Assembly (NCBI GenBank): GCA_000708835.1
Contig: DF237311.1
Location: 1 to 64,000 of the forward strand
Direction of reading: 5' to 3'
Source: Klebsormidium nitens
Lineage: Eukaryota; Plantae; Klebsormidiophyceae
DNA: 64,000 nucleotides
Under the pieces are notes generated by a model, which was not told where the DNA came from, searched no databases, and saw only the letters and a list, made by a program, of their open reading frames with translations. Below, piece by piece: positions 34,167 through 56,957 of this stretch; positions within the stretch are counted from its first letter, which is position 1, and each line of letters opens with the position of its first letter. The position numbers and the translations under genes are program-made.

Positions 34167-34187
34167 ATGCGTTTCTTCGCTGGTGTG
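34167..34187 (+). pseudogene. 5' fragment (MRFFAGV) of the membrane-protein gene interrupted by the transposon
   Basis: ATG CGT TTC TTC GCT GGT GTG. The last codon is the TSD and rejoins GAG ACC GCG... at 56358 in frame. Confidence 0.6.
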
Positions 34188-34520
34188 CACAGGGAGGAAC
34201 ACCGGTTTGCCCGGTCTTCCTGCCCGGCCATCCCCGTCCCTTCTAGTTCTGCCCGGTGATCTGACCCCCTGCCCGGTCTACCGACTTCCCTGCCCGGTCA
34301 CAACACCGGGCAGCCAATCGACGGACGTCCTGCCCGGTCTCGCAAAATCACTGGGCAGGAAGAATGACCGGGCAACGATTCTCTACTACCGGGCAGCGCA
34401 TCACAAGGCAGCAACACGACCCGGGGCAGCCGACATCGCCGGGCAAGTGCGCCGGGCAGCATCTACAGCCGGGCAGCGCAGTCGGGGAAGAAAACCGGGC
34501 AGTGAGATACGACCGGGCAA
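34188..34520. repeat. Left TIR and subterminal TGCCCGG/CCGGGCA array
   Basis: By manual count, 6 TGCCCGG and 8 exact CCGGGCA copies with unique spacers; orientation switches near 34300-34340. Confidence 0.9.
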
Positions 34521-35729
34521 TTAGGTCGGAGAAAGAGGACAGTAGATATCTGCTGCTTTTGTTCCGTAGTTCATACAAGTACTGTACGATCATTCAATGC
34601 GTTCAGATAATCAAACTGTTCGCAATCATTGAATTAGAGTCCAAGACGTTCGGAGCCATTATAATTATGTTGCCGCATAGATATGCATGTAACATAATCT
34701 TTTTTGTCCATTTCGCAGGCGATTAAGCTTCGAACTTCACTCGTTCCAAAGTTGAAGTGTGGAATGAATATATTGCTGCATAGTTGTTCGCTGGACCCCT
34801 GCGCCATGGATCCTTCAAGTCTCGTACATGTGCAGCGCGAAATATGCGAAGATTGATCATGAGCCGATGCGATACTCGCTAATTCATATACAACCTGTGC
34901 TTGAATAGATGGATGAGGCCCATTCGGAGAGCAGAGGCGCAAATCCATGTATAACGATTGATTAATCAAAGGCGTTCCAACTTACATACGGTCGAACGAT
35001 AGCCCTCCTTTTGTTTTGAAAGTCGGTTCGAGCTCGACCGTTGGATGAAGAACGGACAACCCTGATTTCGTCGAAAAGCCCACAGATGTGTGAGGCCACG
35101 CTTCGGCACGTTTATAATAAATAATCGCCCCGAATTCTGCCAACAATGAGGGCGAGGACGAGATGCTGGCTACGCTAATTGCCAACCTTGCTTAGATGAT
35201 CTGAGAGCCGCGGAGCCCTCTGTTTTAATACGAGGCTTGGCGCGTTGATCGTCGGATCGTATACATCGACGATCCTGACTTCATCGGGACGCCCACAATC
35301 ATGCGAAGCCACATTCCGAGAATTTAAAAGGAATGTTCGCTTCACTGTTGTCATGACGCTGGGGCTATGGCGAAACTATATGCGCTTGGCGCCAAGAGCA
35401 GCTAGGCGCCAAGCGAGTCCAATGGGTTCGCCGAGCCCCCTTTTTTGAGAGGCGGTCCGAGCGCTAGGCGCCGACTGTTTGATGAAGAGATCAACGATTG
35501 ATGTTCCGTAATCAGCATCCCATAAACCAGCGATCCAGACGAATGCTCTTCGCAGGCATCATGCATATGCACCAGCAATCCTTCACGCTGCATGTCCAGA
35601 GGTGTTAATTCTGTTCTGATTCCCAGATTCGGAGCCTATAGAGTTGTACGTCCCATTCACAAGCTGTAGTGTAAAGTGGCCCCAAACAATCTTACTTCAC
35701 AAGCTCACCCCTGAAGCAGCTCATCCGAT

Positions 35730-35826
35730 TCCGCTGACCCGTCCGCTAACCCATCCGCTAACCCGTCCGCTAATGGGTCCGCTAACCCCCCGTCCGTAAA
35801 TCCCCGTCCGCTAACTCAGGTCCGCG
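35730..35826. repeat. Degenerate ~12-bp tandem repeat (CCGTCCGCTAAC)
   Basis: About 7 imperfect copies of TCCGCTAAC. Confidence 0.75.
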
Positions 35827-36216
35827 ATCACTAGAGTAATTGTCCTGAGTCACTCGTCCTCAAAGTTGCTGTTATCTGTAGCAAAAGGAGAGGGAGATCC
35901 GTAAGCATCAAATTCGCCCATGAGCGGCAGGTTCACGGAATGGTTGTTACTTTCTCTACGAAATGGTTGACACTTTCTCTTCAATCCTGTTTGTCCCCTG
36001 TTTGTCAAGCGGCAGACTGCGCCTGAACGAGTTCGTGACGGCGAAACTTAAGAATAAGTGCTGTTTCATGCGCTACCGTGAGCTCCTCAAGCGTTCCTTT
36101 CCGGGTGTCTGGCCAGCTTTAAAAAGTCGTCGCGCATCCGTCAGGTTTGGCTAGCCAGGGCGGTGTTTTGCTATCCTGGACTCAAAACCTTGTCAAATGG
36201 AGAGCTTGAGTAGTCA

Positions 36217-37605
36217 TCAGAAGTTATGAAACGGAAACTGCAGTTCGTGTTGACCTGTGGAAAAGCACAGGCACTGGACTCGCCTCCAGAGATTGTATAC
36301 CTCATAAGCCTGTGGCTGAAAAATCTGACCTCCTGATTCGTTGTACGCAGAGCGAAGTTCTCTGTGTCCACCAAGGCCGCTGAGAGTTTCTTCAAAAGCG
36401 GGCATATGTCGAGCGAGCCCGAAAGACACCGTCTTTAGAGCGAATTCGATCGAACTGAGTCGGGGTACGTATCTCAGAGGGCCAGACGCAAAAGTTTACC
36501 CTCAGAAGTAGCTTTGCAAATTCACGCGTCCTTTCGCGAGGTTAAGAGACGGTTCTTTGCGCGAGCTACCGAGTAGCTGCACACGGGTGACAGATTTCTG
36601 ACCCCGGCTGTTCAAATCTGTGGCACTGCATGAAACGTTTCTCTTGACGGCTCTTGTCAGTTCCTATAATGCGAAGGAACCTTTCTCACCTTCTGCCACC
36701 GAGTCCCATGAGCCGTCCGAGTCGCCCTCCGAGTCGCCGTCCGAGTTCGGTTGGCCGTACATCACCTATACACAAGGGGGAAACGGTCAGAGCTGGCTTT
36801 TTCTTCGTACTATTCTGTTCTGTGGTTACAGAGTATTGAACTAGCCAGACCCAAAAGATTGCTCACACTCAGCCCGAATGATCAGAGCTAAGCCTACTTA
36901 TGCGAGCTACCCAGAAGCTCTACACGCTCGATCAAGGGAGAGAAGCGCTGGAAGATCTTCGAATCTCTGCATCCGGCTGCTCAGAAGGGCTGAGAATAGG
37001 GGTGAATTGAAACAGGTCTCTCAACGCGTCTGGTTGCGGCAAAGTAATTGCATCATCACCTGGCCAGGCTCCGCGTCTGAGCTGTCGCCTGAGCTGTCGC
37101 CTGAGCTGTCGCCTGAGCTGGCGAAGTCGTTCCGGATTACCTGTACCCAAATCAGAAAACGAAAACGGTCAGAGAATCGAATCAGCAGGCGAAGGACCAG
37201 CTCGGTGTAGATATCATGTAAAAATACAATCGAATCTCAACCGCGCCAGCTACGCGCTCGTCAACGGAAGAACATTGTTGGATGGAAATTTAGCTGCTTA
37301 AAGCGGCTGCTAGTGGGTGCAATGAATGGGAATCCTGAATGCGCCTGGTTACGACTGGACCTCACAAGCGGACCTTATGAGTTTTTGAATGTCCTCACGT
37401 CTTCTTCGCCATGCGGATTGTAGTCCTCCTCCAGGCGCGGCCACGCCCGCGCGCTCCGGTTGCCCGGCCACACGTCATTCCTCTCTTCCATGTTGTCCGA
37501 GAAGGAGATTGCCCGCACGAACTCGTCCGGTCTCCAGGGCAGTGGCTCGCTTGTCGGCCGCGGCGGACCAACCTCGTCGGGCATGAGCATCAACGGCGGC
37601 TGGAC
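36217..37605 (-). CDS. Probable downstream exons of the third transposon gene (splice model unresolved)
   Basis: Coding-like segments (EVQPPLMLMPDEVGPP...EEDV; PNSDGDSEGDSDGSWD; HMPAFEETLSGLGGHRELRSAY...), some ending at GT donors. Confidence 0.3.
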
Positions 37606-38225
37606 CTCCTTGCACAGTGTTTGAGATAAATGCCTGTCCTTGATGTTTGCTCACGGAAGCGCAAGAAACACCGAAGTGGCGCTCTCCGAATAGAACGGAG
37701 AAGAAAGCGCGAGAGTCCTTTGTCTGAGCAGATTCTCCGGACCAGATTCTTCAGATTGTTTAGATCCGGTAGTATTCTTCTCACTCCGGTTATCGGTGTT
37801 CTCCAGACTCTTCAGATCAGATTCTTCTTCTCACAAGCACTGCAAACGGGCAGCACGGGAATCGCAGAAACCTCAGGTCTCGCTTGACTAGATTCCGGTT
37901 ACTTCGACCCGGCTGGTTTACCTAAATCTCGATTACTCCCGAGTATTAGAAGGAAAGGATGATGGAATCAAGTAGAATCAGAGAAGGCGAGGCCAACCTA
38001 CTGCCAATCGGCGGATTCATCTCAACAAGACAGACAGAGCTTGAAGGCTATTCTGGACAAAAACGTCTACCATCTTCTGGGTTAATCTAGGCTTCTAGCT
38101 GACAATTGATTTTTTTTTCAACTATTTCTGGAGATCCGAGCAGATTTTCAGAACGTTAACCACAGCAGTCGTATCTCGATAGTAGAGAAGCAACGCAAAC
38201 CGCTCAGAAAATATGTACAACTTAC

Positions 38226-38986
38226 AGGTCCATCTCCAGGCCCTGCCAGGCGAGCGCCTTCTTGCGGCTGTTGGCGAGCATCTTGCTGGTTGTGTGCCTC
38301 CTGCTGACTCTCCGCCCCGTCAGCTGCGTCTGCAGTACAGTCCTGGCCGTGACCGCGTGCCTGTTCTCCTGGATTACCGCTGCCCGGAACGCGGCGAAGT
38401 TGACGCTCTTCTCGGAAAAGAGATGCCTGCCGATCAGGCATTCCCAGTCAGATTCCAACGTTGCCTTGGTTGAGAGCTTTCCAAAGTCAAACAGCAAGTC
38501 ATCTTCCGGACGATCATCCGGGTCGAATTCGGGGTTTAGGTACGCCTTTCCGCAGTTAACCTCGTTCTGGCGGGCTGCAAAGTTAGCACGTGCCCCGCTC
38601 GCAAACCCAAAGGTCCACATGAAAAGAATGATTCCATCCCGCAGCTCCCAGTACCCGTCATCATTGCCGAGGCCCACTGCATTGTAGGCTGCCCAGAAAG
38701 CATCATCCATAGCCCTCCAGGCCTCAGCAGGCGAGAGGACCGTCCCCTCCTTCACCTCATCAAACACGATCCAGGCAAAGCCCTGAGGGTTGGCTGTCCA
38801 CCTGGCCATTGACTGTGCCCTAGTGCGCAGACCAAGGACGTAAGATTCCCAGTGCATGCGCCAACCCTCAGAGGCCACCACCAAGATCGCGAAGTTGGGG
38901 ACTTCAAGCATGCACTGGGGCCCATTGAAGCCCTGTTCAGCCAGAAAGCTCAGGCACTTATCCTGGAGAGACGATGGCTCAGACAT
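38226..38986 (-). CDS. Third transposon-borne gene, large exon (~254 codons), unknown function
   Basis: ATG-initiated, aromatic-rich, globular-looking ORF ending at a GTAAG donor (38225-38221). No motif recognised. Confidence 0.55.
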
Positions 38987-40250
38987 GGCGCAGCAGACTT
39001 CAAGAAGGAGCAGCTATGGCGTAACGAGAAAGTGGGGCGCAAAGCTTCCTCAGAAGGCGTTCGTTGCAGGGGCCCCGTTTCTGTTTGAGCGAAGCGGGAG
39101 ACTTTTCGAAGCTTCCATGCGCAATCGCGCAAGGAAAGCCGAAGCTTTGATCGGCCACTGGCAGTCACGCGTACGAAAACGGCAGTTGACGATCGAGCAA
39201 CGGAGGCATAGACGGCAATTGCGCAGCAGTTACACTACTGTAGGTTTTAGCACTGACAGGGAAGTCGACCATTGGACAATCCATATCGTACGTCCGAGAA
39301 AGTTAAGTCCTAGGCAGAACGTACGTCCGAGAAAGTTAAGGCCTAGAATGCTTCAGCTGCTGCAGCAGCACGCCTCACAGATCAGGGAGCGCCCTTTGTT
39401 TTGACTGCGCGCTTAGGCTCCAGCCGTATTCCAGACAGCCATATTCCAGACAGGACGTGCTCAGAAAAGATTGGCTAGAGAAAAGCAGGGCGCTCATGAG
39501 CTGATCAGGTTATTGCCAAAGTTGCGTCCCAGCTCTCAGACCGGCAGTCGCGCTTTGCGTAGATATTCGACGTGGGCGCCTTATTGAAACCCGAGACCGG
39601 TGACGGAAGGTTTCAAGATAGACAGACACAGCATCTGAGCAAACCACACTCCTGTCTTTTGACAAGAAAGTTTGGGACGAAGGGTGCGAACAAACCTCTT
39701 AAAAGGGAGAAGCAGCGGGGGCCTTTGAGTGCCCTCAGATGGGCGCTTTTGAGGAAGCAAGCAGACGGACGAAGGTCCGCGTGTCCAAAATTTCAAAGAA
39801 CGGCTCTCCTTTTGAGTCCAGTTTTTTGTTCATGAAACTGTGAGAAACTTCTCAACTTCTCAAATTAGAAAGGGGACAAGATCAGGCCAGAAATATATCT
39901 AAAGAATCCGGAAAGACGGGAAGAAGAACAAGTAGCTTCGCCCACGAACAATCAATCAATCAATCATTCTTTCAATCAGTCAGTCAATGCAAGCTTTGAT
40001 ACTTTGATGTAGCTGAAATCAACGGGATCAGGCTCTAGCAGTAAGCTGATGGGCGCTGGCCAGAGATTCTTGCTTAGTCTAGGCTTTGTTCAGTCTGACG
40101 TAAAGTCTGATCATTCACTCCAGCTGTATGTGGGTAGACCTGACCCTGCAGACATGTGTCTTAAACTGACCCTTATCGACCGTTTTCAAATGTCTGAATA
40201 AATTGCACTCACGTTTTTCTAAGGGAACCCATGGGTTCCCTTGGCCAGCC

Positions 40251-43200
40251 CTAGATCCGGATGCGTACGGGCGGCAGCGCCTTGAACGTGTAGATCTGGC
40301 CCCGCTGCCTGTCCTCCACCATCTTCACCGACTCCACGCGGTCTTTTATCTGGTTCCAGGTCACCGTCTTCAGCTCGTAGGCGCGTGCCTCCCCGTCACT
40401 CTCAGCGTCACTCTCCTCGTCTCTCTCGGCGTCGCTGTCGACGTCCATCTCTCCCTCGACTGGGTAGGGCGTCCAGTCTTCTTCCCCCCCGTCCGGTGCA
40501 GGTGGTCCGCATCTTTTCAGCCACTGGAGGGCTGCCTTCCTTCCCCCACCGGAGCTGACCTTCCGCACGATGGCGTACGCCAAGGACCAGCCCGGCCTCA
40601 CCGACTTGAGGACCCCGTACGGGACTCCGTAGCCCCACTGCCCTTCTACACCCTCTTTCCGGACGTCCGCGTCCTCTAACACCTCCACTCGGACGATGTC
40701 CCCGACCTGCGAGATTTGGGCGTCCGAAGGTGAGGCCGAGAATCTACAGTAGTAAATTGCTTGCAAAAAAAAAACGGGCCGACTTGACAGGAAGGCGAAA
40801 GGATTTTCGAAGAGCTTGTCTGCAGCAGGTGGTGGGCTCTGTGAGAATTCAAGGTGTTCTTTACGTAGTGCCAGTCTCTCAAGCTATCGCATAGCCTTAG
40901 TGTGCAATCAACACGCATCACTTCAAAGATTGGTTAAAAGGACCCCTTATGGAGAGGCTTGAACAACTTTCAGGGTTTTGCTTTCGGATTGCGGACGTTG
41001 CAGGAGCTCTTGTCGCACCGTCTTCATCGCGGCCGCACGCGAGGTTTTTGTCAAGGTTTCTGCGAGGTTTTTCTCGAGGTTTTGCGCGCGGCCGCGCCCG
41101 ACCGCTTAAGATGTTTTGTTTGCACAGCCGCGCGCGAGGCCTTTATTGGGGCCGCGCGCGAGGTTTTGCGCGCGGCCGCACCGACCAAAGGTTTGCGCGC
41201 GGCCACGCCCAAGGTATTGCTCGCGGCCGCGTCCGCGGTTTTGCGCGGCCGGGCGCGAGGTATTGCTCGCGGCCACGCGCGAGGTTTTGTGCGCGGCCGC
41301 GGGCGTGTCCGAAGCAAATATTCGCAAAACCAGAAGGTTGGGGGGACGTGAAGAATAGAATTTCGGCGCGTCGTGAATGATAATAGAGTGTGCCACTTGT
41401 CGCGTTTCCTCCAAGATAGGGTCTGCCGTTTTGCTGATGGCAGAGCCTATTCTGATGTCTTATGGTTTCTGGAAAAGAAGACCAAAGTCTCTCGAAGCCT
41501 CGGAGTCTGTAAACAAACTCAAGACTCCCAGAAATAATAGTCTGTGAACGCAGCTGAACGTCTCCCACGTACATTGAAAGTCTCCAAAAAAAGTTTGTAA
41601 AATCTTACCCGGGGTAAGACCGGCACCCACACGTCGTGCGCCTCGAACCCCAGCCCGCTCGGCGCCACCTCGATCACGTGACTCGCCCCTGTGCAGAGCG
41701 TCTCGCCGAGGGCGGGCACCGGGATGAAGTGCCTCCGCAAGTGGCAAGCCAGCCGGACGCGCTTCTGGCCTGGCTTCAGGGGCTCGAGCATGAGGCAGTT
41801 GTGCGGACTGCCACCCAGGGGAAGCCCCGTCTCCGCGTCGCGCTGGATGCGGAACCGCGAGTATTCCAAGAAGATCCGCCGGGGGCCGTTCTTGGGCTTC
41901 GCGGTGAAGAACGACTCCACCAGGACGTACTCCTCCGACTCGTCCGCAGCTTTCGGGGCCAGCACGGCGTGGTCGCCCGGAGCGAAGTTGTTCTCGCCGA
42001 GCTGTAGAGGGTGAGTGCATCGTGTGTGAGTCGCTGTAAGACTTTTCTGCGAGACGGTTACTTCTTACAGCCTCTGTCAATCATGCTTCATAGAGGCCTA
42101 CAGTCGCATGTTGCCCGTGATACTACCAATCGGGTCGATTGTCAGAAAGATTCGCACCATCTGTCGAAGAATATCGATTCAATTTGAAACTTGGTGGATT
42201 CCAGAAACTTAGAAACACGCGCTTTCGATCTTGGGGAAAAGACTGTTCCAAACGGGTCGTTCAAGGGCGCGAGGAAAGCCCTCAGCACGTACTTTCGACC
42301 GCAGGACTTCGTTCAGACTGCAGTATATCTTTTGGCAGGACCCATATAAGGGGGGGAGGTCGCTTATAACCATGCTTGGGCTGAGGGAAGGCTTCTCGGA
42401 AACCCGTCTCACCGGAAAGTAAAATCAGTTTTTCTTGGCTAAAAGCCGTGGATGCGTTGAGTGGGGTCCATAAAGTCTTTTAAAATATCTCGGGCACGCC
42501 AGACGCCCGACCGGTTAGGGAGCTGTGGCGTTAAGTGTTGACCAGACCGGTACTAGTGAGCCAGGGATTGAATGAGACTGAATTGGTGTGAATGCACTCT
42601 CTCAGGTCTGAATCCGAAAGAAATTTCACAATCCGCTCTCGCAAGAAGGTTAGCCGGATTGCATGAAACGATGTTGGAGACGTAACCGTGCCTTTCAAAG
42701 CGGCTGATGGCAGAAACGGAAAGTCGTCTGATTCCAGAGCTTGCCTGCTTTCTCGCTTCGGACACGTCCTTGCTCCTGAACGGCCTGTTGAGCAATTCAA
42801 AGTCTCCGTCAATTAGCTGAAAGACTGTTTAAAAATGGCAAGTTCTTTGCGGCGCAAAACCTGAATACTCCTTGCCCGCCGGACCGTACGACGATCCACT
42901 CGGTAGTACCGCTCCCCCGTCCTCGCGGCCGCCCGCGCCTCTCCGTCAAAGATGCGCTCGACGGCGACGCGCTGCACGTTCTCCAGTCGCAGGCGCGTCC
43001 GCGTTTCCCACTTTTCCGGCAACTGCCCGACCGCCACACCCTCCTCGCGCACGCGCGCGAGTATCTGCTCGTCCGACGCGCGCGCATCGCGCGGCCGCTC
43101 GAGCCCCAGCTGCTCCACGTAGGTCGCGGCTTCTGTCTGCGACGCGGCGAAGACGACCCCATCCGACTCGCGCGCGCGCGCGCGCGCCCACACGTCGTCG

Positions 43201-46200
43201 CCCGCTGACCGTCCGGCGGCACGGAGTCGCTCTTCGCGTCGTTTTCGGAGCAGCCACGCAATCCTCACGCAGAAAAGCGCCCGCTTGTGGAGCGTACTCT
43301 CGACCTCCTTGCAGTTGTGCTTGGTGTTGACCAGCTGCTTGATCTTGCGTTCTTGCGCGTAACACCAGTACGCGTCGGGCGGGCCGTGCATGCGCACGTT
43401 TGTGGGCATGTGCAGGCAGGTCTCGTGATCGAGCGGGCGCAGCTTGGGCAGCGCGTACTCCTCCGCGCGGACCAGCTTCGCCTTGAGCAGCTGCTGGAAC
43501 ACGCACGCAAGCTTGCTCGTCCACCCGCCCCGCGTGCCGACCAAGTACACGAGCGTGTGGATGCACGCCACCAGCTGCACGATCGCGTACCCCTCCGGGT
43601 CCTCCGTCGCGACGTCGGCGAACGCGGTGGCGAAGCAGACCGTCGCCGCCTTCATGTGCTCCTCCGCCTTCCACCACCCCAGCGGCCGCTTCTCCGGGTC
43701 TGCCGGCCACCGTCCGTCGCCGAGCTTCCGGGTGGGTCTGATGCCCGCCAGCCGCTTGCCGAAATCCTCTTTATCGGCCCGGGGAGGTTCTAAACTGAAC
43801 GTCGTGTCGCCCTGCTTTGAAGTGACCCCGTTCAGAAAGTCTTGTAACAGGTGCTTCACCATGTTTTCGGGGCCACAGTGCAGGAAGTCGCTGCATATGT
43901 CCAGCAACAGGTGCAGACCGTACGCCGCCCACAGGATCAATAGCATGCAGAACCCATTGAAGCCCGTCCGCTTGTTGATCCGATTCCGCTCCGCCTTTGA
44001 CCTCGCCCCTAGGTGCTCGAGCATTGCGGCCGCGACATCTTCCATCGTCTTCTCTTCGCACCCGTCGCGCGCGAGCCGCCGGCCGTCTTGATAAACCAGC
44101 CTCCCGTCGTTGTAGCGCGTAGCCTGGTGCTTGCAGCTCCGCGAAACCCAGTATCCCCCCAGCTTGAACTTCAACATATCCGCCAGGGCCGGAAGGTCTG
44201 AAAACACGCTCGAGACTATCATCCGGATCCTAACCGGGCCGTTCTGAGGGGGGAGTTTGGGGCTAATCTCGTTGGGAGGGAGGGCGTAGTTGACCAGGAT
44301 GCCCTCCTTGAAGAGGCGCAGGGCGTCCAGCACGAATGCGAGCATGAAGGGGTCGTAACAGTCGGGGCCGGCGACCATCTTCGTCTTTTGGGGCAACATT
44401 AACGGCCACAGCCAGTCCTCCGTCCCCCTGTGCAGATTGCGTTTGGAGACCGTCATTGGAAACACGTCCAGGATGCAGCTGGACTTGCTCGACGTGGTTG
44501 CCGTCGGGAACCCGTCCTGATGCAGCCCCAGCTTCAAGTTCCTCGGGTCCCCCCGTCTCGCCAGGTCTGACAGCGTCGCCGTCATCTCCGTTTTGCAGAT
44601 GGGGCACAGCGCTTCGAAGCGCTGCCGTTCGGCGACCCACATCTGGAGGGTCGGCCGGGTGAACCAGGGGGGGCTGAACGTCTTGGCGCAATGCACTTTC
44701 CGGCTTCTGCAGCACTCCGGGCACGTCAGCGGAAGAAGGAAGCTGGACTCGGGGTCGAAGAACGCCGCGTCGTCTCGCCACCGCTCCCCGTCCCAGACTT
44801 CCGACTGCGGCTCGAAAACCCCCCCCTTCGGTTGCCCCAGCCAATGTTCCCGCTGTCCCCAAGCCCCCCGGACCGTCGCGTCTTTGCAGCCTTCCAGCGT
44901 GGTGAGCTTCGCGCGCGCGTGCAGCTCTGGCGATATGTACGGCAGCTCGTACGCGTCCCGCCGCCGGAAGCCGCAGTCCGGGCACTTCTCTTGGTGCACG
45001 GGGCAGTCGCGCCACGCTGGCCTGCGCGGCCCCTCTTCGCATTCGGGACAGGGAGTCGTTCTGCAGTCTTCGGCGCTCGGGGCGAAGAGGTGCCAGTGGC
45101 CCTTGTTCTCTCCTGTTTTGGGGCCCGGGTGCCAGCGCCAGTTCTGTGCTTCGCCCAGCTCACGTGACGACCTTGCCAGGTAGGCAGTTACCTGCACAAG
45201 AATGTTTCGAAACTGTAAGTCTACGTACCGGAAGTCATACCATCGGAAGGCCCGACTTTTCCATGCGATCCCGCGTGAAGGACAAGTTTTTTGGAAGCAT
45301 AATCTTTTCGTGCACCAATGTTCCGCTGTTCTGCCGTTCCTTTTGTCTGCCTGCTCGAAAGAAGAACGGAACAGCAGAAAATCGGAACAACGGTGCTTGC
45401 GTGCGCACCACCGCTTCCATGTGCACCCCTCCTCGTGAAAAACTCAAGATCTTTCAGTTGAACGTTTTCAAAATCCAACTCTGCTTTCAAGCCGTCTTAA
45501 TCAATTTTGAAAAAGAGCCAATCTCCATTCAGACATTGCGCACACTTCTTTTGAGATGCAAACAACTTGGTAAATCAAAGACTATGATTGTCTCCTTGAT
45601 CAATCTCACGAGTTGACGTCTGGTCAGAAAAGTTGATTGGACGGAGATGTCTCCGAGCACAGAATCTACAGAATATTGCTATGCTTCCCTCTCCTTCAGC
45701 CGTGCTTTACGATTCAACAACGATCAGATCCCTCAACTTCAACTGCCCGGTTTTGAAAGACGGGGAAAGCTTATAGAGTTAGCGGCTGAGTTACTCGCGA
45801 ATAACTTACCCACCATGGTGCTTATTGGCCAACTATGTGGTGCTTGTTGGCCAACTCTCTAAGCTTCCCCTTCGATCGAGGGGACATTGCGGACTCGACT
45901 GAGTTGTTGACTAACTTTCTAAGCTTCCACCTCCACACATTACTACCAGGGGAAGCTTAGAAGTTAGTCAATAACTTAGTGTTTGAAAAGCCAGCAGGTT
46001 GCAAGCTGAGAATTGTAATGTTTTTGGTCAATTACGTCGCCTTTGGTGGTCAAGTGCAGGGCCCTTGTCAAGCCCCGCGGGACAAGGGTCCGGCCGGGGC
46101 TCATCGTCGTGGGGTTGGATTTACCGGTGAATGTTACCCCCCAACCCCCTTGCTGGAATGAAATTCGGAGAAGGCTCTGCAAATTGTCTTATAAAATTGT

Positions 46201-47226
46201 CTAATTGTCTTATAGAACTGTCTAATTGGCTAATCGTCAAATATTTGTCTAATTGCACAGCATTTCAATTTCTAATTAGGAACGAAGATGCTGCACGGTT
46301 CTCTGAATTCAGATCCTGCATCCTGACGTACCTAAATGGCAGCAGAAAGGGAGATTAATTCCATCTGACGGAGGTCTCCGCAAACTAGAAGAGAAGAATC
46401 TGACCAGGGCCAGGTTTGTTCAAAGGCCCTCTCGAAGTTAACAGATTGTACTGGACAGCTAGATCGATACATATTCATCTGGCCAGCAGCTTCACAGGAG
46501 ATTTGGTCAGTTCGGACAGCCTACCTGAGCATGCGATTGAGGAAGAGCCAGCCTCGTGATGGTCTCTTTCCACCGAGGGTCGATTGCCGCAGCGAAGGAG
46601 TCGCTCGCGCCGATGCACGTCTTGAGCAGCTTGTCCATGACTGCGTTGCTGAGAGCACTCTGCTCTCCAATCCTCTGCAGGTCGACGATCGCATCGAGCA
46701 GCTTCTCCTCAAGAGCAGACCCTGGACCACCCGCTTGCCCTGGATCTTCCCCCTGGCCATGCTCGCGGTCATCGTCTACAGCAGGAGCCTCAAAGTCCGG
46801 TAACTGGCCAAACCAGCTGCCAATCCCTGCCCTTTCTGTTCCGTTTCTCCCACCCTCTCTTCGCGCATGCGCTGCTTCAGCTCGTGTCCCTGGCTCTGCA
46901 CCATCTAGCCCCCCTTCCCCCTCAAATTCCACGTTACCAGCCAGAAGATTGGCCTGGTTTGCTTCAGAGCGCCCTGCTGGAACTCGAAGCTCTGTCTCTG
47001 CGTTTGGGATTTCTCTCTCCACTAAGGCTCCTGCTGCAGATGTTCGAGCATGTGAACTGACAGCAGCTGCAGGTGCTCTCTCTTTCTCAAGGTGCTTTCT
47101 CCTGGTGCGTTCGTTGACGTACCGTCCCCCATCCTTGTTCTGTTTGCACAGCGTACATGTGCACCAGATTCTTCCCTCCGAGTCGAATTCCGCTTCGAAA
47201 TCCACGGGAACCTGTTTCAGACGCAT
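40251..47226 (-). CDS. EnSpm/CACTA transposase (TnpD-like), ~1,293 aa, with C-terminal BAH-like modules
   Basis: Phase-0 exons 47226-46525, 45191-42861, 42001-41609, 40706-40251. N-terminal CxCxxC transposase-associated motif (WCTCTLC...RTRRKH). LGLHQDGF, FSDLPA, DFLH (CMC DxxH signature) and HMPTNVRMHGPPDAYWCYAQER (DUF4218-like region with the catalytic E). Confidence 0.88.
41027..41305. repeat. CG-rich ~24-bp degenerate repeat array in transposase intron 3
   Basis: About 9-10 units of GAGGT(T/A)TTGC(G/T)CGCGGCC(G/A)C. Confidence 0.8.
45762..45980. repeat. Two related inverted repeats in transposase intron 1
   Basis: 45898-45928 pairs imperfectly with 45951-45980. 45762-45780 pairs with 45853-45870. 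Shared CTAAGCTTCC core. Confidence 0.7.
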
Positions 47227-48124
47227 GCTTACTTTCGAACTATACTGCCGGCATACTGCAAGCGCCTCACTGATTACATGAAGATTCTCATGATCGCGAG
47301 CAATTCTCAGTGACACCTACAGCTTGAGGACGTCGACTCCATCTCTTCACATTCTTCGATCTGTTTCCCCTCTGCAGGAATCTAGCTCGATCTCTGCTAG
47401 CATCACAATCGCTTTTGCGACTGCACATGCGGTCTCTCACAAAGCAGCAAATGAGCTCTAGATAGTCTCCGAGGGTGCTCAAGCTCATCATGTCGATCAG
47501 CCTCGAGGCTGATCAAAGAGCTCTTTGAACGTACAAAGTCAACCATTTCCTTCATCTTGCCATCTTCACTCTGCAGCAAAACACAAGGAGCACCAGCCGG
47601 GGTTCGACGCGAGCATCGAAGCTAAGATACAGGTATGCGCAAGTACTTCGCGCCCGTCGATGTTATAACTATCTGCAAAGAATCCCGCCAAATTTGAGGC
47701 AGATTCGCGCGTACGGCTCTGATTTCCAGGCTACAGGTTGACTGTCAAGAACGATCGTCCGATATCTTTGGAAACCTGGTTTTGACACGGAGTTACGCAC
47801 TTCGGTTCGATAGGAGATCGAGGTAGATGACCTGACGGAAATGATGTATATCGTCGAACTTCGTGTCAAAGCGAGCGCACGAAATCCCTGGTGTTCGAAC
47901 ATGCAGACGTCGCGCGCCTAACGTTAGGTTAACCCTGTTACAGTCAGCGCACAAGCAAAGAACGATGCTGCAGCAAGGAGGCAGCACTAGCAGCAGAGAC
48001 TTAGATCAGCAGTAGTAGCAGCAGCAAAAGCCGCTGCAGGTCCGTCTGAGAAGGGGCCAAAGCATCTACAGATCGAAGTCGTTCTGGTTTTTTTTGCATT
48101 TTGATCAGCGCTCCATAGCTTCGG

Positions 48125-51100
48125 ATGGCGCAGGCTGACGCGAACGAGATGAATGACAGCAGCGCTAACGTGAGCGATATGACCTGCGAGGAGTTTGCGC
48201 AAGAGGTTGAAAAGAGATTGAAGAGCGATAGATACACGAAATTCATCATCGAGGAAGAGATCAGCGGAGAAGCCTTCCAGGCTGGAGGCGACCCTCTCAT
48301 TCAAAGCTTCACGGATCTAGACAGTGAAAAAAAGATAAAGCAGGGTCACATCGTAATCTTGCAGAAGTACAGACAGTCAAGCTTTGGTACGCAGGGATCC
48401 ACTGATGAGAGAGTCAGCGGTGAAGCTGACAAGGGTCCTGCAGATTGCCTGAGCAGGGAGCTGGTGGCTGTGGAAGAGGGGGGTGCTTCTGAGGGGGCAA
48501 AAGAGAAAGGAACGGAGAAGAGGAAGGCAGCGCAAGCGATGAATGAACCTGCGACTGCACAAAACCTGTTCGCGACACTGTGGCAGAGCCATAAGTGGAA
48601 GCACGTCATGGGAGGGAATGGGGTCCGGAGGATGCAGGCAATGCATGCAGACCTTAGTAACCGGATGCACGTGGATCTTGGCCTGGAAGACTATGCCCAG
48701 GGCGGGAGCAAGGAGAACGAGAATCTGCCAGATGAGCAGCAGGAGCGGCTGGCGTCGATCCACTTGAAGAAGAACGGCAAGGACCGAGAATGGAGGGACC
48801 GGATCTACGACGCCATCATGGGGGAGGGAGAGAGCGGTGGAATGTTGACGACTCTGGACGGCAAGGTCTTCAGGTGGCCCAAGGGTAAGCTTGAAAGCTT
48901 TTAACTCTCGCAGAAAGTACACTTTTTTTCGAGCCAAACTTTCTTCTCTGTGCAGTACAGCTCAGTACGTAACAGACTCTTGAACTGGAAGGTATCATAC
49001 AGATCCATCGCTGATATCGATAATCCTGGGACATTAGACGCTGTCAGCGTGATCTTTCTCAATCTTGGAAATTATACGATGATATCCTGCTAGCTGTTTT
49101 GTGCTTTTCATCTTCGGATGCATCTGGCCTGCGCATATATATGGACCGTGGAGATTGTCAGTCATTCTTGATTGCAGATTGCTAAGACGAAAAGCACTGT
49201 TTATTGTGACAGCGTTATCGAGAATTATCACCTTCGTCCTGCTCGGTGCATCTGCAACTTCGTACGCATCCAAGGGCGTCGAATTTTATCAGACGTACAC
49301 GAACGCCTCTTGCTGGATTCGTGACTTCACTGGCTTTGATGTGCAGCCGCTCCAACAGATTTGTCGGGAATTGTTCCGGTCATGAACTGGATTTGACTCA
49401 CGACTGTAGACTCTGCGAATCCCAGCATCAGATTCGTTCAGCTCAAAGAAATCGGTCTCCAGCAAATCGCGGAGGATTGCCAAGGGCATCATTCTAATTG
49501 CGCTGCATGCATTTCAGGATCGATCACGTACATATATGCATACTTTCACCTGCAGGGACCTTCAACAGGACGTTTAATTCCATCCTGGACACGATGAGGA
49601 AGAAGCTCCTGAAGGCAGAGAAGTACAAACGCAACCAGCAGAAGAAACTACAGAAGTACCATGCCAACAAGAAGCTCAAGGTAGGAGAGCCAATGTTCTT
49701 TGGACGGCTGCTTTGGATGAAAATCGACAGGCACATTGATATCTTGTTCTTCTGTGCCCCGCCTCGCGTGAATCTCTTGGCATGTCCGAAACACAGGGTC
49801 GGCCTTTAGAAACAGAGGTTAGTGCTAGTGTCGGTCAGCTTTCCGCAGGCTGTTTCTGCACGCTTGGGGCGGCGCTCTCTTCACATCTCAGTTGCGTGCC
49901 TCTGGACTCCCTACGTCTCAAGGCCAGAATCTTCACCCCCTTGTTCCAATCTCAGAATACTCTCAAACTTAAGGGGAACGAGTTCTGAGATTCAAATCCC
50001 CCGTCGTCGATGGATCTGATCAGTGCGGCATGATTCCTAAAGCTTCCTTTCCGAAAAGGCTGGTCAAATATGTTCGAAGGTGATGTAAATCGCACGTCAA
50101 AGTGAGAAACTTTGCCAATTCGTTTCCTCTCCCCCGAGCGTTGAAGTTCTCTGCTCTATCTTCAATTCACCTCTGAAATAACTTGTCGGCTTGATCACAT
50201 GCCGTTGTTTGAGGACCGATTCGCACCCGCTGGCTGTTTCGAGTTTGCAGGGACGTTCCGAAGCTCGCGCTGCGCTCCCGCAAGGAAGCGCCGACGGGTC
50301 ACACGGCGAAGCTCCCGCGCAGGTAGGCCCGAAAACGCTGTGTGCGTATACGTTTCTGCGCATACGTTTCGTGTCTCCTAAAAAGTGTGAATACACGAAG
50401 TTTTGAAAACCTCTCGGGACTGTCCGCACAATCCGCTGCACAATCCGCCGCAGAACCTGGGGGTTATTCACATCACGTGACTTGCCAGCGGTAAGGAAAG
50501 CATTCAGCGGATTGGTCTCAGCCGTGCGAGGTGGAAGCAGCCAGAAAGCCTCTCCCGTTTGGAACAGTCTCTGTGTCTCTTACACGTTCACGGCTGCGTG
50601 ATAGGTTCCGGAACCGACGCCCGACGCAGCCGACGATTACGTGGGCCCCGAACAGCAGCTCAACAGACAGGCACGTATTCAATTTTGAGAAAGCCGCAAC
50701 GCGCGGAATTTGCCCCGCAGAGAGAGGAAGACTCCGATGGGCTCTCAGTCTGATCCCTTTCGCCTCGGTGCAACGTCGTACTGGAAGCGTCTAAGAAAGC
50801 AGTGTTATTTCAAGGCCTCTTGCTCGAATATAGTGTTGACTCTGCAGATCTGAGCTTTGTCGGCATTGCAATATTACGCGAGTGATTCTGAAGCCTACTC
50901 GTGTGCAGGAGAGCGGTACGCCGTCCAGCGACCCCCCCCGCAGCCCTCGAGGCGAGCCGCGCGCGTCAAATGCGAACCCGGTGAGTGCGGAAGACGGTGA
51001 ATTTGTGCCCGTTCCTGGTTTCGCTTTATCAGCAACGCAGGATAGGGAAGACTCGGATCTCCTGTCAGTTGGACTTCTCAAAACTTTCTTCTCGACGCAG

Positions 51101-54100
51101 CGTTGTACCAGAAGCCCTTGCGAATGATCTTAAATTCTAAGACCCTCTAGCTGTCCGCATCGAAGATTACACTCTTTGCAGACTTTACTTTCGCATCTGA
51201 GGCCTCTGGCCTGTACGCTGGGCCGCAATACTGGTGTGAAGCCGCAATACTGGTCTGAAGCCGCTATGTGTGCAGGCGAAGGAGACTGGTGCGGACGGCC
51301 CCCCTGGCATCTTGGACGACCCTGAGGAGGCGCGCACTGCCATCGCAGCTGTGAGCGAGAATGGACTTTCTGCCCAGTACTTTCCGACCAGTACTTCTGC
51401 CCCCGACGCATCGAAACAAAAATTTGTTCACCGCATCAGATAACACGAGATTCACAAAGAGTATTTATAGGGTCTTGCCGTTGCGCACCCCTCGTCTTGT
51501 GTCGGGTTGAATACACGCTTTTGACCGCCTCCACTGCAGGAGAACCAGCCCGCTGACCACCCGACGCCTGCTCCCACGAGCGCCACGAAGAAGGCCCCTG
51601 TCAGCGACGCGTCCAAACAGCGGTAAGCGCTGCACTCGTTCTGCCAATTGCGCACGCTCTGTTTGATATCTCCCTCGTAGAATCTGCTAATGGCTCATGA
51701 GGGTCTGCGAGAAATCTTACCGATGATACTATATCCGGTCCTTTTCGAAGCCAGACTTTCGCCTTCTTTCCACTCCAGGTTTTTTCAGGCCAGACTGCGC
51801 CGCCGATTGATTGCCCGAGCTGGTTCCTTATTGATAGTTGCGGTTCCTTGCGCTCTTTGTGGTTTTTCGGAAGTTGCAAGATACACAGAACGACAGGCGT
51901 TTGCCTAGCGACTCCTAAGCCCTTTGAAACGGATGGCTGCTCTTTGACCTCTTTCATCTTGTTCTCGCGACAGCCAAAGCCGAAGTCGGGCTGCGCGATC
52001 CAGGGGTGCGCGTCCGCGGCCAAGATGCAAGATACGGAGTTCTGCAGGGACTGCTCTCAACCCGTGCACAAGGAATGCGCGCGCGTGCAGCTGAAGAAGC
52101 TATACGGAGTGCCGCGGTACGACGGGGACGTGCTGTACTGCAGCGAACATATCGCCAAATTCAACTTCCGGAAGGTCAGTTGTTCTTTAACGGGCGGAAG
52201 GTGCGCTCTCGATCTGCCTGCATTCGCTTCAAGGGTCCGTGGCGAAGTTGCCTGCTCTCCTCTTTGATAGCTCCAGAGGTTCTCATCGAGTCAACTCTGA
52301 TTAGAGGTCGGGGGAAGATCTTTAATCGAACACCCTGAAGTCTCTGAAACCTCGAGAGAGTCAGTTCTACCCTATCCTGACCCATCCAGATTTAGCTCAG
52401 AGACAAGCACGCAGCAGCCTGCCTAAGTTTCATGTGAGGGCGCGCGGCGAGTAATGTCCTGTTTTCAGTGAGAGCGTATTTACACCGGCTCAGTCTCTGG
52501 CTCACCAGCTGTTTTTACTTCCTAACACCGTATCTACCTTATTAACCCGTCAGTGAAGGTTCCGGACATGTCAGCAGAATTTGCGGATATAGGACCTACC
52601 GTTCTGAGCTTTTCTTGACAAGGGTTTGAATGGCCTGCCCAGACCCGCTTCAAGGCGACCCGTTCTCTTGTATCTAAAACGGCGCCAAATAATCTAGCTC
52701 GGCCAGTCACAGCGTGCCACGTGTCACCGCTTAACACTCTCGAGTGCCCTTCCCGTGAGTCACAGAGCTAGATTTCACGGAGATGCCAAGCCGCGCGATA
52801 ATTAAGTGTAATTTTGGTCCGAGTCACGTCTCTCTAGCGACAAATCTTTAGCACTACACACATACTTTACTTCCTTTTGCAGGGGCTCGGCGGCAAGTGC
52901 GCGCTCCCGAGTTGCGACAAGGCGGGCAACATGACCCAGCACTGCTGCAAGACCTGCCAGGCGCCGATGCACAACCTTTGCTACCAGAATTTCCTACGCC
53001 AGGAGTATGGGAAGGAGGACTTCGACGGCGGCGCCTACTTCTGCAAGGTCCACGCAGGTGCTTTGGGCTTGAAGAAGGTAAACGCGCGACACTGCTCTGT
53101 TGCTCTTAACAGGATCCCCTTGTTTGTGTCCGCTCGCATCGGGGTTTTAGAGCGCGCGGCGCGCGCGCGTTGCATAGCAGTTGTCGGGATTTTAATCTAG
53201 GGTGCGCGCGCGACAGGAGAAAGAATAGACTTCAGTGGGCGCGCGCGCCCGGCCTCGAATAAGCGAATTTTATCCAAGCTCTGCTTCGGTGCGATTGTAC
53301 CTCTTTTGTGATCTGTGCGTCTAAAATCCGCCGTTGGAAGTGCGCCAGAAAACACCCTAAAGCCATCTCTTGTCGATGTTCTGGTGTTCACTGAACTTTC
53401 CCAGCCCCCGGGTCGTTTTCGTATTGCTTCTTCTTGGCCCCTTCTTGCTGTGTGGTCGGGTGTATAATCATTCGTGACTTCACGATCAGCAGAGAATCTT
53501 CTGAATCGATCTCGCTTCCGTCTTTCCAGCTGACGACAGCATCCACGTCATCAACGGGAGTATGCGCGGAGACGCTCCTGGGCCTGTCGGAGCAGGAGGT
53601 TGATTTGCCGGTGAAGAAGCGGTCTGGGGAAAGCGGGGACGCCGGCGAGGAGCAGCAGAAGAAGCGGAAGGGGGGTGGGGACAGCATGAAGCAGGACAAG
53701 AAGAAGCGCAAAACTGGCCCGGAAGCGGAGAAGACGGACGGGGATGACGGGAAGGACAGCAAGACAGAGGAGGGGGGAAAGTCAGGGAAGGACGGAAAGG
53801 GGGGGAAAGGCGACAAACCCAGGAAGGAGCTCACGTCAGCGGAGCCAGAAACCGACCCACCCACGGAGCCGGTCGAGGACTCTGCGGCGCCGCGGCAGAG
53901 CATGCGCAAGGCGGTAAAGTATACGCTCATATGGAATGCCAGCCATGTGGTTCCGGACAAGTCAGTGGGGAAGAAGGGGGAGAAGCGGGCAAACGGGGGC
54001 GAAAAGGCCAAAAAGGGCAAGAAGAAGCGGAAGACGGCGGCCCCGGAGGACAGCGAAGATGAGATGAGCCTCGAGGGAAGCGCCGCGGAGTCCTCTGAGG

Positions 54101-55020
54101 AGGAGTCAGACGCCGAGGCGCAGACGGACCTGCCAAAGAACGGCGACTTCGAGGACCGGGACGAGAAGCTCTCGCCGGCGATGCGAAACAAGTATGAGAT
54201 GATCTGCATGAAGGGCCTGGATGTGACCCAGTCTTACAAGGTAAGAAAAGCATCTTATTTGAGGAGCCGCAACTCGACAACGGCCGGGTTGAATTGCTTT
54301 CACTGCTTTCAAATGCCACGCCAGCGGTCACCATCTGCGAAGAGCTTGGCGGTACATTATCATTACCATTAGTACCGCACATATGTTTTCAGCGGGCTGT
54401 CGTCCGCGCTTGTATCGCTTGTTAGGGGGATAACTGAGTCAAACGGAGGTTACTGACCAGATTGTGGTGGGGCTAGGTCGGGGTTAGGGCTGGTGTTAGC
54501 GGAGGCAGGGTTTTGCTTTTCTGTGTCCCTGATTATCGAGGTTTGAGAGCAAATAAAGTGGCTTACCGTCTGGTCGACAACTCTGCCGGACGATTGTCGT
54601 TCAGAGAAGTTCCTCAGAGACGTGCATTCGTGTGTTCTTATGATCCCAACCATTTCCTCGCTCGGCACACCAGTGCACGCGACACTCACAGTCTCTTCCA
54701 GTCGGCATGCTTTGATTCTCCGTTGCGCCCATTCTTGCCATAAACACCTGAATCTCGAGGGTTCAAGAAAGATTGCTGTTTGCTGACGTTTACTTTTGTA
54801 TTCGCAGCTGAGCACGGATACCCTCGTTAGCGCGATCAAGAAGCTCCAGATTCCGCACGTGTCCAAGAATCGCGAGCTGCCTGATCTGCCCCTCGAGTAC
54901 CTGCTCAAGCTGCTGGCGGAGGGGCTCATCGACAAAAAGAAGATCGTGATCAAGGGCAACAGGTGGAGGGAGGACGCGACAGAGCTGCGCAAGTCGGACA
55001 TCAGTCGACCTTTTTGTTAA
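48125..55020 (+). CDS. Transposon accessory protein: SAM-like N-terminus, tandem PHD/ePHD-like zinc fingers, K/E/D-rich region
   Basis: First exon from ATG 48125 (MTCEEFAQEVEKRL...YTKFIIEEEISGEAF...IKQGHIVILQK, SAM-like). Phase-0 exons 51974-52174 and 52883-53077 each encode C-x4-C-x10/11-C-x2-C-x4-H-x2-C-x20-C-x2-H. Further exons at 53530-54240 and 54808-55020. Small middle exons (49.5-51.6 kb) are only partly resolved. Confidence 0.72.
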
Positions 55021-55175
55021 GACTCCGGGTGAGTCACTTATACGAAGAAGGGTCCTCACTCTAGCGTGTGAGAACGGGAAAACCTGGTATTCAGAATTGA
55101 TTTGAAGACATTCCTGAAATGAGACCAGACCAGCAGTGTCGATCGACGAAGTTCCCGCGAAAACAGTCGTGTCAG

Positions 55176-55293
55176 CGTAGCGCGCGCGCGGAGTTTGTAC
55201 AGGCCGTCCCGCGCGCGCGGGGTTTCTGTCGGCGTCCCGCGCGCGCGGGGTTTGTGTCGGCGTCGCGCGCGCGCTCGCGCCAGCCGGGGTTTT
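55176..55293. repeat. CG-rich 28-bp tandem repeat downstream of the accessory gene
   Basis: CGTCCCGCGCGCGCGGGGTTT(C/G)TGTCGG at 55205-55232 and 55233-55260, plus flanking partial copies. Confidence 0.8.
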
Positions 55294-56018
55294 GAATATA
55301 CTGCTATCATCTCCTCATTACAACAATCCGTGGTTACTCGGGCACCGCGCGGGAAGGTTGGGACTTCGGTACTGCTGCGATTTTTTCTTTGTTTCGCGCT
55401 TGAGCCATTCTATAAACGTGGTTCAACGGTCTGACAGCGACAGAGGGCAGTAATTCGAGGCGCCTAGGTGCTTAGCGATACTCAGGCATCGCTCGTCTCA
55501 CAAGGGCGGAGCACTTCGCGGATCAAAGCACAGTCATCTAAAACTACTGCCTTATGTGCCCAGGAAACGAGCAGGCCAGGTTTGCAGCGAGACAGACATG
55601 CAGCGCGCAGGCGAAATATCGTGTCGATATCAAACGAAAACCTTTTTTCGCGTCGGGCATCAATCCTCTCATCCATTCGTTCTTCCGTGCATGCAGATGT
55701 ACAACGGCGTAGCGCATCAACATGAAGCTCACAGGCAGTTCAAGGCTTCCAAGAGCGTGGTAGATAGGCATCAGCTTACGCGTCAGCTGCGGCCAACGAG
55801 AAGCAGGACACATTGAGATACAAGGATATTTTCGTCGCATCCAGGTTGGAGGCCAATAGATGCAGAAAGAGCTTAGTTGTACGGGCAAGACTGAGCAAGG
55901 ATACTGAGTCTCAGGCTTAGAGGTTGCTGTAACTCCTTATGACTGCTTCGATATTGATTGATCTTTCTTAGAACTCTCTTTTCGACGTCTTCCTGCTCTT
56001 CTCTATGCGCCAGCATGT

Positions 56019-56354
56019 CCCTGCCCGCTCATGTACGATGAGTTTGCCCGGTCTAATTGCCCAGCCACTTGCCCGCACATGTGAATGCGTTCCCCGGCGT
56101 TGCTGCCCTCCCTTGAGCGCAAGCTGCCCGGTTGTACTGCCCGCTCTTGAGCGCGAGCTGCCCGTTTGTGCTGCCCGGTTTTCGTTCGCGCTGCACGGAG
56201 ATACGGGTAACCCCTGCCCGCTCGTGCTGCCCGGCCACGATCACCGGTCAAACGGCCCGCTGCCCGGATTTCGGCCGATGACCGGGCAGGAGGCCGGGGA
56301 ACGCGCTGCCCGGTGAGCTGCCCGTTAACGGGCAAACCGGTGTTCCTCCCTGTG
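56019..56354. repeat. Right subterminal TGCCCG array and TIR
   Basis: About 15 (C/T)TGCCC(G/A/T) copies, ending in the inverted TIR. Confidence 0.9.
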
Positions 56355-56957
56355 GTGGAGACCGCGTTGAGCTCTTGCTATAAACTGGTGCCTGTCAAGC
56401 TTTCCCTTGGGATAAATGTCGAGGATCTTAATTACGCAATGGTGCTCGCAGCTATTCCAATGGTGGGGATACCCGCCCTTTGCTTTGCTTACGTCGCGCT
56501 CGATGACCTTCTCTTCAAAGCCCCGCTGCCCGACCCTGGCAGCCTCAACGCCTTTCTCCAATCAAGCGGCCAGAACGTAACGCTCAGCCTCTGTACCATC
56601 AGGGACGCGTTTCAGGTCTATCTCGGTTTCTCAGACAGCTGCGACCAGGTTTTGGAGTCTCGCTATCCAGAAGCTGGCGCCTCCTTCGTGGAAATAAGGA
56701 AATACACCAAAAGACAGGCTTACAGCCATGGCTGGGAGCTAAGTGTTATCCTTTGTTTTGCTGGCATAATCTCATGCTACTCCTGGGTGCTTGCTTTCGG
56801 AGGCCTGCTTTACTACTTAGGGGGAACCGTACGCCTGCTTTGCTGTCAGCGACCTCAGGCCAAAGTGCACGATGTCGAGATGCAGGACGCTGCACTTTTA
56901 GATGATGACGACGGTAGTGACGGACTTGGTAGTGGGTCAGATCTGGAAGATTCTTGA
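56355..56957 (+). pseudogene. 3' part of the interrupted membrane-protein gene (paralog 1, single LPDP domain)
   Basis: Open frame with TM-LPDPGSLNAF...CTIRDAFQVYLGFSDSC-TM, homologous to 58365 and 62515. The reconstructed empty site gives 206 aa. Confidence 0.75.

Follow-up and report, generated by a model that had tools for sequence, protein, structure and literature searches.

The 64,000-nucleotide stretch of Klebsormidium nitens DNA analysed here (contig DF237311.1 of assembly GCA_000708835.1, positions 1 to 64,000 of the forward strand; hereafter the window) contains a 22-kb element at 34188-56354 that is a real, structurally intact, single-copy cut-and-paste DNA transposon of the CACTA/EnSpm kind. 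It looks autonomous in its anatomy and carries two divergent genes, one for a transposase whose C-terminus includes a predicted BAH-like module, and one (gene 2) for a putative partner protein with SAM-like and PHD-like modules. The substitution patterns place both genes under purifying selection across the family. Taken together, the best overall explanation is a two-gene lineage of CMC/EnSpm type, of which this element is an intact single-copy member, together with the mechanism proposed below (probability about 0.75).

Boundaries and copy status of the element

The element is delimited by 26-bp terminal inverted repeats (TIRs) of sequence CACAGGGAGGAACACCGGTTTGCCCG, which begin with CACAG and are complementary at 26 of 26 positions, and it is flanked by a 3-bp target site duplication (TSD). 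The terminal features are as follows.

34185-34187, no strand: left TSD copy, GTG (an identical GTG abuts both termini)
34188-34213, plus strand: left TIR, 26 bp, starting CACAG (100% complementary; homology with the related loci L001 and L002 ends exactly here)
56329-56354, minus strand: right TIR (complementarity; junction spanned by read contigs, X1 record 2 and X3 record 11)
56355-56357, no strand: right TSD copy, GTG (matches the left GTG)

By our own estimate, the chance expectation is about 7e-8 perfect 26-bp inverted pairs in the 24.5-kb region. The boundaries are fixed by the nucleotide homology with the related elements in L001 and L002, which breaks off precisely at 34188, by a complete relative in L004, and by contigs from DNA runs X1 (55243-56900) and X3 (56281-56575), which cross the right junction without differences. 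The perfect TIRs and the perfect TSD described in the first-pass annotation, an earlier reading of the sequence alone, were both recovered, and at the right junction they have read support. The ends of the lineage read 5'-CACAG...CTGTG-3'. The CACAG terminus is common to the window element and to all five of its relatives, and differs from the canonical CACTA/CACTG pentanucleotide.

Read depth was 16-18.5 over the element and 20-35 over the flank. Since interior and flank depths are roughly equal, the element is present as one copy. A scan of metagenome contigs with the TIR pattern gave 0 matches, and Rfam gave no match within the element. A 3.8-kb DNA contig of run X1 matches the window only at 56272-56313 (2 differences) and then diverges into a different TIR-like sequence, which suggests another family member elsewhere in the genome.

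The transposase

The transposase gene lies on the minus strand and was modelled from homology and splice sites. It comprises 4 exons separated by 3 GT-AG introns and encodes 1308 amino acids with no internal stop.

46525-47226, minus strand: exon 1, ATG at 47226 (homology, gene model)
42861-45191, minus strand: exon 2, Cys-rich N-terminal part and DDE core (alignment motifs)
41609-42046, minus strand: exon 3, predicted BAH-like beta-barrel module (fold model of the homologue P0001; ratio of nonsynonymous to synonymous substitution rates, dN/dS, 0.35)
40251-40706, minus strand: exon 4 (coding from 40706 to 40254) and TAG stop (40251-40253), conserved C-terminal module 2 (conservation; AlphaFold2 (AF2) predicted local distance difference test score, pLDDT, <50)

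This model aligns end to end and collinearly with annotated K. nitens homologues, in agreement with the uninterrupted spliced transposase that had been proposed. The core residues are D at 44514-44516 (HQDGF), D at 44196-44198 (FSDLPA) and E at 43350-43352 (YAQER). Both D residues, the H(4)H motif (HETCLH) and the glutamate of WC..ER (WCYAQER) align with distant homologues. In place of C(2)C, every family member has S-R-S-C; as this S(2)C form is invariant across a family evolving under purifying selection, it does not represent damage to this copy.

In protein searches the transposase scored best with hypothetical K. nitens proteins (72% identity over the core). No Pfam family matched at E<=0.01. 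At E<=10 the only match was DUF4218, a domain of plant CACTA transposases (E=0.04, below the cut-off), and Transposase_21 (PF02992) gave no direct match even at this threshold. A family profile built from 5 members and searched against 1.84 billion representative proteins recovered 359 proteins, including P0017 (3.6e-47) and P0034 (8e-32). Transposase_21 was found in 13 of the 37 longer distant profile matches (best E 3.4e-9), and the score of P0034, 35.6 bits, exceeds the Pfam cut-off of 28.6. Because its distant homologues carry Transposase_21, the transposase is probably a divergent CMC/EnSpm-type enzyme.

EnSpm elements are defined by CAC..GTG ends together with 3-bp TSDs, and C(2)C and H(3-4)H motifs are shared across the wider clade to which they belong (PMC12730594). 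The ends and TSD of the window element fit EnSpm as so defined, so that the element and its transposase family can be classed, on sequence grounds, as a divergent EnSpm-like member of the CMC/CMCT clade. The CMC/EnSpm type assigned at first pass is upheld by the 3-bp TSDs, the subterminal repeats, the CAC...GTG ends and the transitive Transposase_21 homology. Assignment to Plavaka was rejected on account of the CACAG termini and the Plavaka Pfam model, which gave 0 matches among 38 family members and homologues. Transib/ProtoRAG was likewise rejected, because the TSD is 3 bp and not 5 bp and because sequence and profile searches of the Protein Data Bank (PDB) with the transposase returned nothing significant, RAG1 and Transib structures included.

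The BAH-like module

Exons 3 and 4 of the transposase encode two conserved C-terminal blocks. An AF2 model was built on residues 742-1035 of P0001, a K. nitens homologue with 57-66% identity to the window protein. Residues 1-110 of this model reached pLDDT 65-84, the remainder being poor. For module 1, the top 50 of 50 Foldseek matches were BAH domains (among them EBS, DNMT1 BAH1, SHL, ZMET2, BAHCC1, AIPP3 and Rsc2), with E from 6e-3 to 0.16 and template modeling (TM) scores up to 0.49, and VIA-align gave Z values of 8-9.6 for 42 chains, nearly all of them BAH. In the atlas, the C-terminal region has fungal proteins as neighbours, a DUF6830 cluster among them, and one neighbour is named 'BAH domain-containing protein'. 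No sequence match of module 1 to Pfam BAH or to solved BAH domains was found, and PDB sequence and profile searches with both C-terminal modules gave nothing significant. With moderate confidence, module 1 is predicted to be BAH-like in fold, the model being too uncertain for the interpretation of single residues.

Module 2 was rejected as a second BAH domain, since hhalign against module 1 gave a probability of 0.2% and AF2 pLDDT there was <50. Of the two BAH-like modules that had been claimed, module 1 was retained on the Foldseek and VIA-align results and module 2 was not. The BAH-like module is not cargo, being a C-terminal exon of the transposase itself.

Gene 2, the putative partner

Gene 2 (48125-54372, plus strand) is divergent, head-to-head, to the transposase gene. 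The model, based on conserved blocks and splice consensus, has 5 exons and encodes about 707 amino acids; annotated K. nitens homologues have 665-807.

47227-48124, no strand: intergenic region, 898 bp between the two start codons, presumed shared promoter (gene models)
48125-48884, plus strand: exon 1, SAM-like domain (residues ~15-90), disordered linker and conserved helical domain (residues ~145-235)
49556-49680, plus strand: exon 2, conserved basic helical segment (FN.TF..I.D...ERY..QAKK)
51974-52174, plus strand: exon 3, first C4HC2H (PHD-like) finger (sole part seen in an RNA run)
52883-53077, plus strand: exon 4, second C4HC2H (PHD-like) finger
53530-54372, plus strand: exon 5 (coding to 54369), tail rich in K/E/G with KKRK motifs, then a conserved acidic block at the C-terminus and the stop (54370-54372)

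Residues 15-90 were modelled by AF2 as a small helical bundle (pLDDT 63-86), and nearly all of the best 34 Foldseek matches to it were SAM domains (TM up to 0.77, E at least 0.55). The top matches were those of lymphocyte cytosolic protein 2 and L3MBTL3, followed by the polymerising Polycomb-group SAMs (Scm, Ph/PHC3). A profile search with the gene 2 N-terminus also listed the L3MBTL3 SAM, at E=0.86. Pfam gave no match for the SAM-like region, and the helical domain at residues 145-235 had no match.

The finger exons share eight invariant ligands, C-x4-C-x10-C-x2-C-x4-H-x2-C-x20-C-x2-H, giving a C4HC2H pattern as against the canonical C4HC3 of PHD. Their Pfam PHD scores were below the cut-off (E=0.02 and 0.09), and all 10 named atlas neighbours belong to PHD families (0.84-0.87). 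In the PDB profile search C1 and PHD domains scored equally weakly, and nothing significant was found in PDB searches with the fingers or with the gene 2 N-terminus. One finger is present in the homologues of L003 and L004, and two in the others. Of the SAM-like and PHD-like domains noticed at first pass, the SAM-like fold and the C4HC2H fingers were recovered, and Pfam significance was not.

The exons of gene 2 matched no accessory family in Pfam and showed no sequence similarity to TnpA of maize. The gene does occupy the TnpA-like position that had been suggested for an accessory gene, and by analogy it may be TnpA-like in role.

Related elements and selection

Gene 2 occurs in five of five related loci (L001-L005), including loci with transposases only 46-49% identical to that of the window. 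Overall, the transposases of these loci are 46-82% identical, and gene 2 and the BAH-like exon are collinear in all five. Against L005, dN/dS was 0.21-0.37 for every exon of both genes, and 0.23-0.37 for gene 2. Since every one of the five related loci carries gene 2 and selection on it is purifying, gene 2 is a gene of the family and not cargo, and the one-off capture considered in the first-pass annotation does not apply to it.

The complete relative, L004:1902-19577 (K. nitens scaffold DF237050.1), has 17,676 bp, TIRs matching at 25 of 26 positions, a CACAGGG start and the TSD GCT/GCT. Positions 142-15535 of L005 (JGI metagenome 3300060284, contig Ga0590114_0003468), presumably from a Klebsormidium-like alga, run collinear with window 54259-34163, with 65-82% of nucleotides identical. 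Within the K. nitens genome, the nearest annotated relatives show only 68-72% identity.

At L001:15683-16816, the annotated K. nitens homologue P0002 runs past the stop of P0001 and of the window gene into downstream exons, from which the peptide LPWRPEDWVRA is conserved in the window. These exons could be an alternative C-terminal isoform, an extra exon, or a small downstream gene fused by annotation.

37438-37572, minus strand: short conserved stretch coding for a peptide (LPWRP..VRA) that also occurs in the downstream exon annotated in P0002/L001

Subterminal repeats and tandem arrays

Both ends of the element are rich in a TGCCCG core, which occurs 14 times in the terminal 450 bp at each end as against about 0.7 times per kb elsewhere. 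The commonest subterminal 8-mer is CCGGGCAG, with 16 copies.

34208-34520, no strand: left subterminal repeat field, 14 TGCCCG/CGGGCA cores, unit approximately CCGGGCAG (about 40-fold over window background)
56022-56334, no strand: right subterminal repeat field, 14 TGCCCG/CGGGCA cores, 12 of them in one orientation
56093-56177, no strand: 34-bp tandem unit within the right subterminal field
41119-41305, no strand: GC-rich tandem array of about 7.8 copies of a 24-bp unit, within transposase intron 3

In the left field the outer block has one orientation and the inner block is inverted. The unit is specific to the subfamily, CCGGGCAG in the window element as against CCGGGCAA in L004, within the lineage-wide form CCGGGCA(G/A). 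A 28-bp tandem array of 3.8 copies is also seen near the right end, at 55169-55274. The terminal enrichment of TGCCCG and the several short tandem arrays agree with the motif arrays reported at first pass.

A lineage-specific segment and a candidate third gene

The left part of the element contains a segment that is missing from the related loci with which it could be compared.

34488-39357, no strand: 4.9-kb lineage-specific segment (missing from L005, which is collinear, and from L001 and L002)
38225-38986, minus strand: orphan open reading frame (ORF) of 254 codons, candidate third gene, inside this segment

A nested element was rejected as the origin of the segment, as no bounding repeats, TIRs or TSD were found. 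The ORF has a coding-like distribution of GC over codon positions (GC at third positions, GC3, 0.72). It had no Pfam match, no homologue among 5.8 billion proteins and no similarity to any related locus or protein compared with it. As an ORF with no homologue, in a segment absent from the relatives, it leaves a third gene unsupported; of the two genes claimed in addition to the transposase, gene 2 was confirmed and this one was not. The lineage had been called unusually large; the extra length of this 22-kb copy is due to the 4.9-kb segment and not to the reader genes.

Expression and insertion site

This copy is nearly untranscribed in the listed RNA data. The transposase appeared in no listed RNA run, although contig-based RNA data cannot show absence. 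The only RNA contig touching gene 2 among the listed runs, a low-depth contig of 202 nt from run X5, covers 51979-52175 in the first finger exon and carries 5 unmatched nucleotides at the predicted donor; it is weak evidence of a spliced gene 2 transcript.

When the element and one GTG are removed, a 237-codon open frame runs across the joined flanks. In the right flank, 56358-56885 codes for the C-terminal half of a membrane-protein family, whose tandem paralogues lie at 58395-59250 and 62563-63496. The N-terminal half of this family is not encoded to the left of the element, so that either the target was a partial gene copy or a rearrangement occurred. The joined frame is for this reason no proof that an intact exon was hit, and the copy appears to have come to rest either immediately upstream of, or inside, one partial copy of the tandemly repeated gene for this membrane protein. 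For the empty site, suggested at first pass as a check, an exact 26-nt joined-flank pattern gave 0 matches in metagenome contigs.

The membrane-protein family itself is Cys-rich (LPDPxSLNxFL ... CTIR..FQVY.GFSDSC ... AKVHDVEMQ) and has three tandem copies here, one of them partial. Homologues about 50% identical were seen only in JGI metagenomes and one EukProt transcriptome, with no Pfam domain on record. Further away, a tRNA-Met (CAT) gene at window 511-583 is the sole tRNA found by ARAGORN in the window.

Proposed mechanism and alternative explanations

In the mechanism proposed for this lineage, the transposase would recognise the TIRs, cut there and make 3-bp staggered insertions, with gene 2 acting as an architectural co-factor that parallels maize TnpA in role and not in ancestry. 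By that analogy, gene 2 may bind the subterminal repeats and pair both ends through self-association of its SAM-like domain, a step for which we would give slightly better than even odds. The BAH-like and PHD-like modules could then dock the complex on histone tails. Such docking might bias the landing site or gate cleavage, as the PHD finger of RAG2 does for RAG1, but this is offered tentatively and at well below even odds. That the BAH-like module and the SAM/PHD-like partner together form a transposon-encoded histone-reading device, gating cleavage or steering integration by chromatin state, is unlikely, and a role of docking in counteracting the silencing of the element seems, if anything, a little less likely still.

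Several observations weigh against the preferred reading, a two-gene CMC/EnSpm-type lineage with this mechanism. Pfam scans covering every long ORF and exon gave no significant domain in either protein, and neither protein had a sequence match in the PDB. The Foldseek E-values are weak for both the BAH-like and the SAM-like module, the fold models are middling (mean pLDDT 54 and 60), and the BAH model rests on the homologue P0001 and not on the window protein. The element is single-copy, the transposase is in no listed RNA run, and nothing points to present-day activity. Serine replaces the first Cys of C(2)C in this family, and the joined-flank pattern for an empty site gave 0 matches.

In one alternative, the reader-like modules are not histone readers and would serve the transpososome only, through DNA-end binding, protein contacts or oligomerisation, independently of chromatin state. 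We put this at well below even odds, about the same level as the biasing or gating role of histone docking. By sequence, none of the modules is a significant match to BAH, PHD or SAM, the fingers are C4HC2H and not canonical C4HC3 with C1 domains scoring equally weakly, a shared fold does not show function, and many transposases use zinc modules for DNA binding. However, three modules resembling chromatin-associated domains co-occur in one two-gene unit, all top fold matches of module 1 are histone- or nucleosome-binding BAH domains, the nearest SAMs are of the Polycomb group, and capture of reader domains by transposable elements (TEs) is documented (10.1101/2021.11.30.470311). The copy itself may also be an immobile relic, intact but silenced or defective, its intactness reflecting limited time since insertion; we consider this a live alternative, a little short of an even chance. 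Single-copy depth, the near absence of transcripts, the divergence of the nearest annotated relatives in the same genome and the altered C(2)C motif would all fit a relic. With one copy by depth and no listed RNA run containing the transposase, the description of the element as young and probably mobile is unproven. Yet neither the TIRs nor the TSD has a mismatch, the reading frames of both genes are uninterrupted and their splice sites canonical, the S(2)C form is invariant family-wide under purifying selection, and the RNA data have the limit given above. One-off capture of host genes by this copy, that is, true cargo in the style of Pack-CACTA, is very improbable as an account of the non-transposase genes. 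Among the compared loci, only this copy has the 4.9-kb segment that contains the orphan ORF, and the segment could be captured or lineage-specific DNA, but the ORF has no host homologue among the proteins searched, and for gene 2 and the BAH-like exon capture is refuted by their collinearity and purifying selection in L001-L005.

Should the modules bind histones, the element would provide a compact natural system, with two genes and with its ends and repeat motif both defined, for a chromatin-reading cut-and-paste transposon, and the question would become whether chromatin is used for target choice or for escape from silencing. Its host is an early-diverging relative of land plants, in which such biology is unexplored. 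Should they not bind histones, what remains still usefully documents a divergent CACTA lineage from an alga, one wholly overlooked by standard Pfam-based annotation.

Comparison with known systems

The maize En/Spm element encodes the TnpD transposase and the TnpA accessory protein, and its subterminal motif fields are asymmetric. The Klebsormidium element resembles En/Spm and other plant CACTA elements in its 5'-CAC...GTG-3' ends, 3-bp TSD and large size. It also shares with En/Spm short subterminal repeat arrays in both orientations, arranged differently at the two ends, and a DDE transposase (here transitively related to Transposase_21/DUF4218) accompanied by a second element-encoded protein. 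In contrast to En/Spm, the Klebsormidium terminus is CACAG and not CACTA/CACTG, and the transposase misses the Pfam thresholds, has S(2)C for C(2)C and ends in a putative BAH-like module. Moreover, gene 2 is divergent and has its own start, whereas the second protein of En/Spm arises by alternative splicing of one unit. Unlike TnpA, with which it shares no sequence similarity, the gene 2 product seems to be built from SAM-like and PHD-like modules. The fungal Plavaka elements are distant CMCT relatives with 2-3-bp TSDs, but their termini are TGT..ACA or CATCA..TGATG (PMC12730594), as against CACAG here.

Domains of the chromatin-reader type are also known from Gypsy elements with a chromodomain and from DNA transposons fused to PHD or Chromo. 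Grau-Bove et al. (10.1101/2021.11.30.470311) reported that TEs carry reader domains and proposed that these guide insertion or evade silencing. Their survey highlights PHD and Chromo, whereas the present element would combine a BAH-like CMC transposase with a SAM-PHD partner. In the literature that was searched, neither this family nor a BAH-like CMC transposase accompanied by a SAM/PHD-like partner was described.

The RAG1/RAG2 and ProtoRAG/Transib systems are similar in having a CMCT-clade DDE enzyme and a separately encoded partner with a PHD-type finger. The coupling of the RAG2 PHD finger to H3K4me3 is the best precedent for histone-gated cleavage. The ends of the Klebsormidium element also start with CACAG, as does the heptamer CACAGTG of the recombination signal sequence, but this likeness carries no special weight because CAC termini are common to the whole CMCT clade (PMC12730594). 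The systems differ in that the Klebsormidium TSD is 3 bp and not 5 bp, no RAG1 or Transib structure matches the transposase in sequence, the partner lacks a kelch propeller and the genes are head-to-head. If the modules do read histones, the element would offer a non-vertebrate comparison for the RAG1/RAG2 arrangement. A histone-reading device of this kind in a streptophyte alga would be a parallel to RAG1 and the RAG2 PHD finger within the same broad clade, and would suggest that CMC-type elements have coupled transposition to chromatin from early on and repeatedly.

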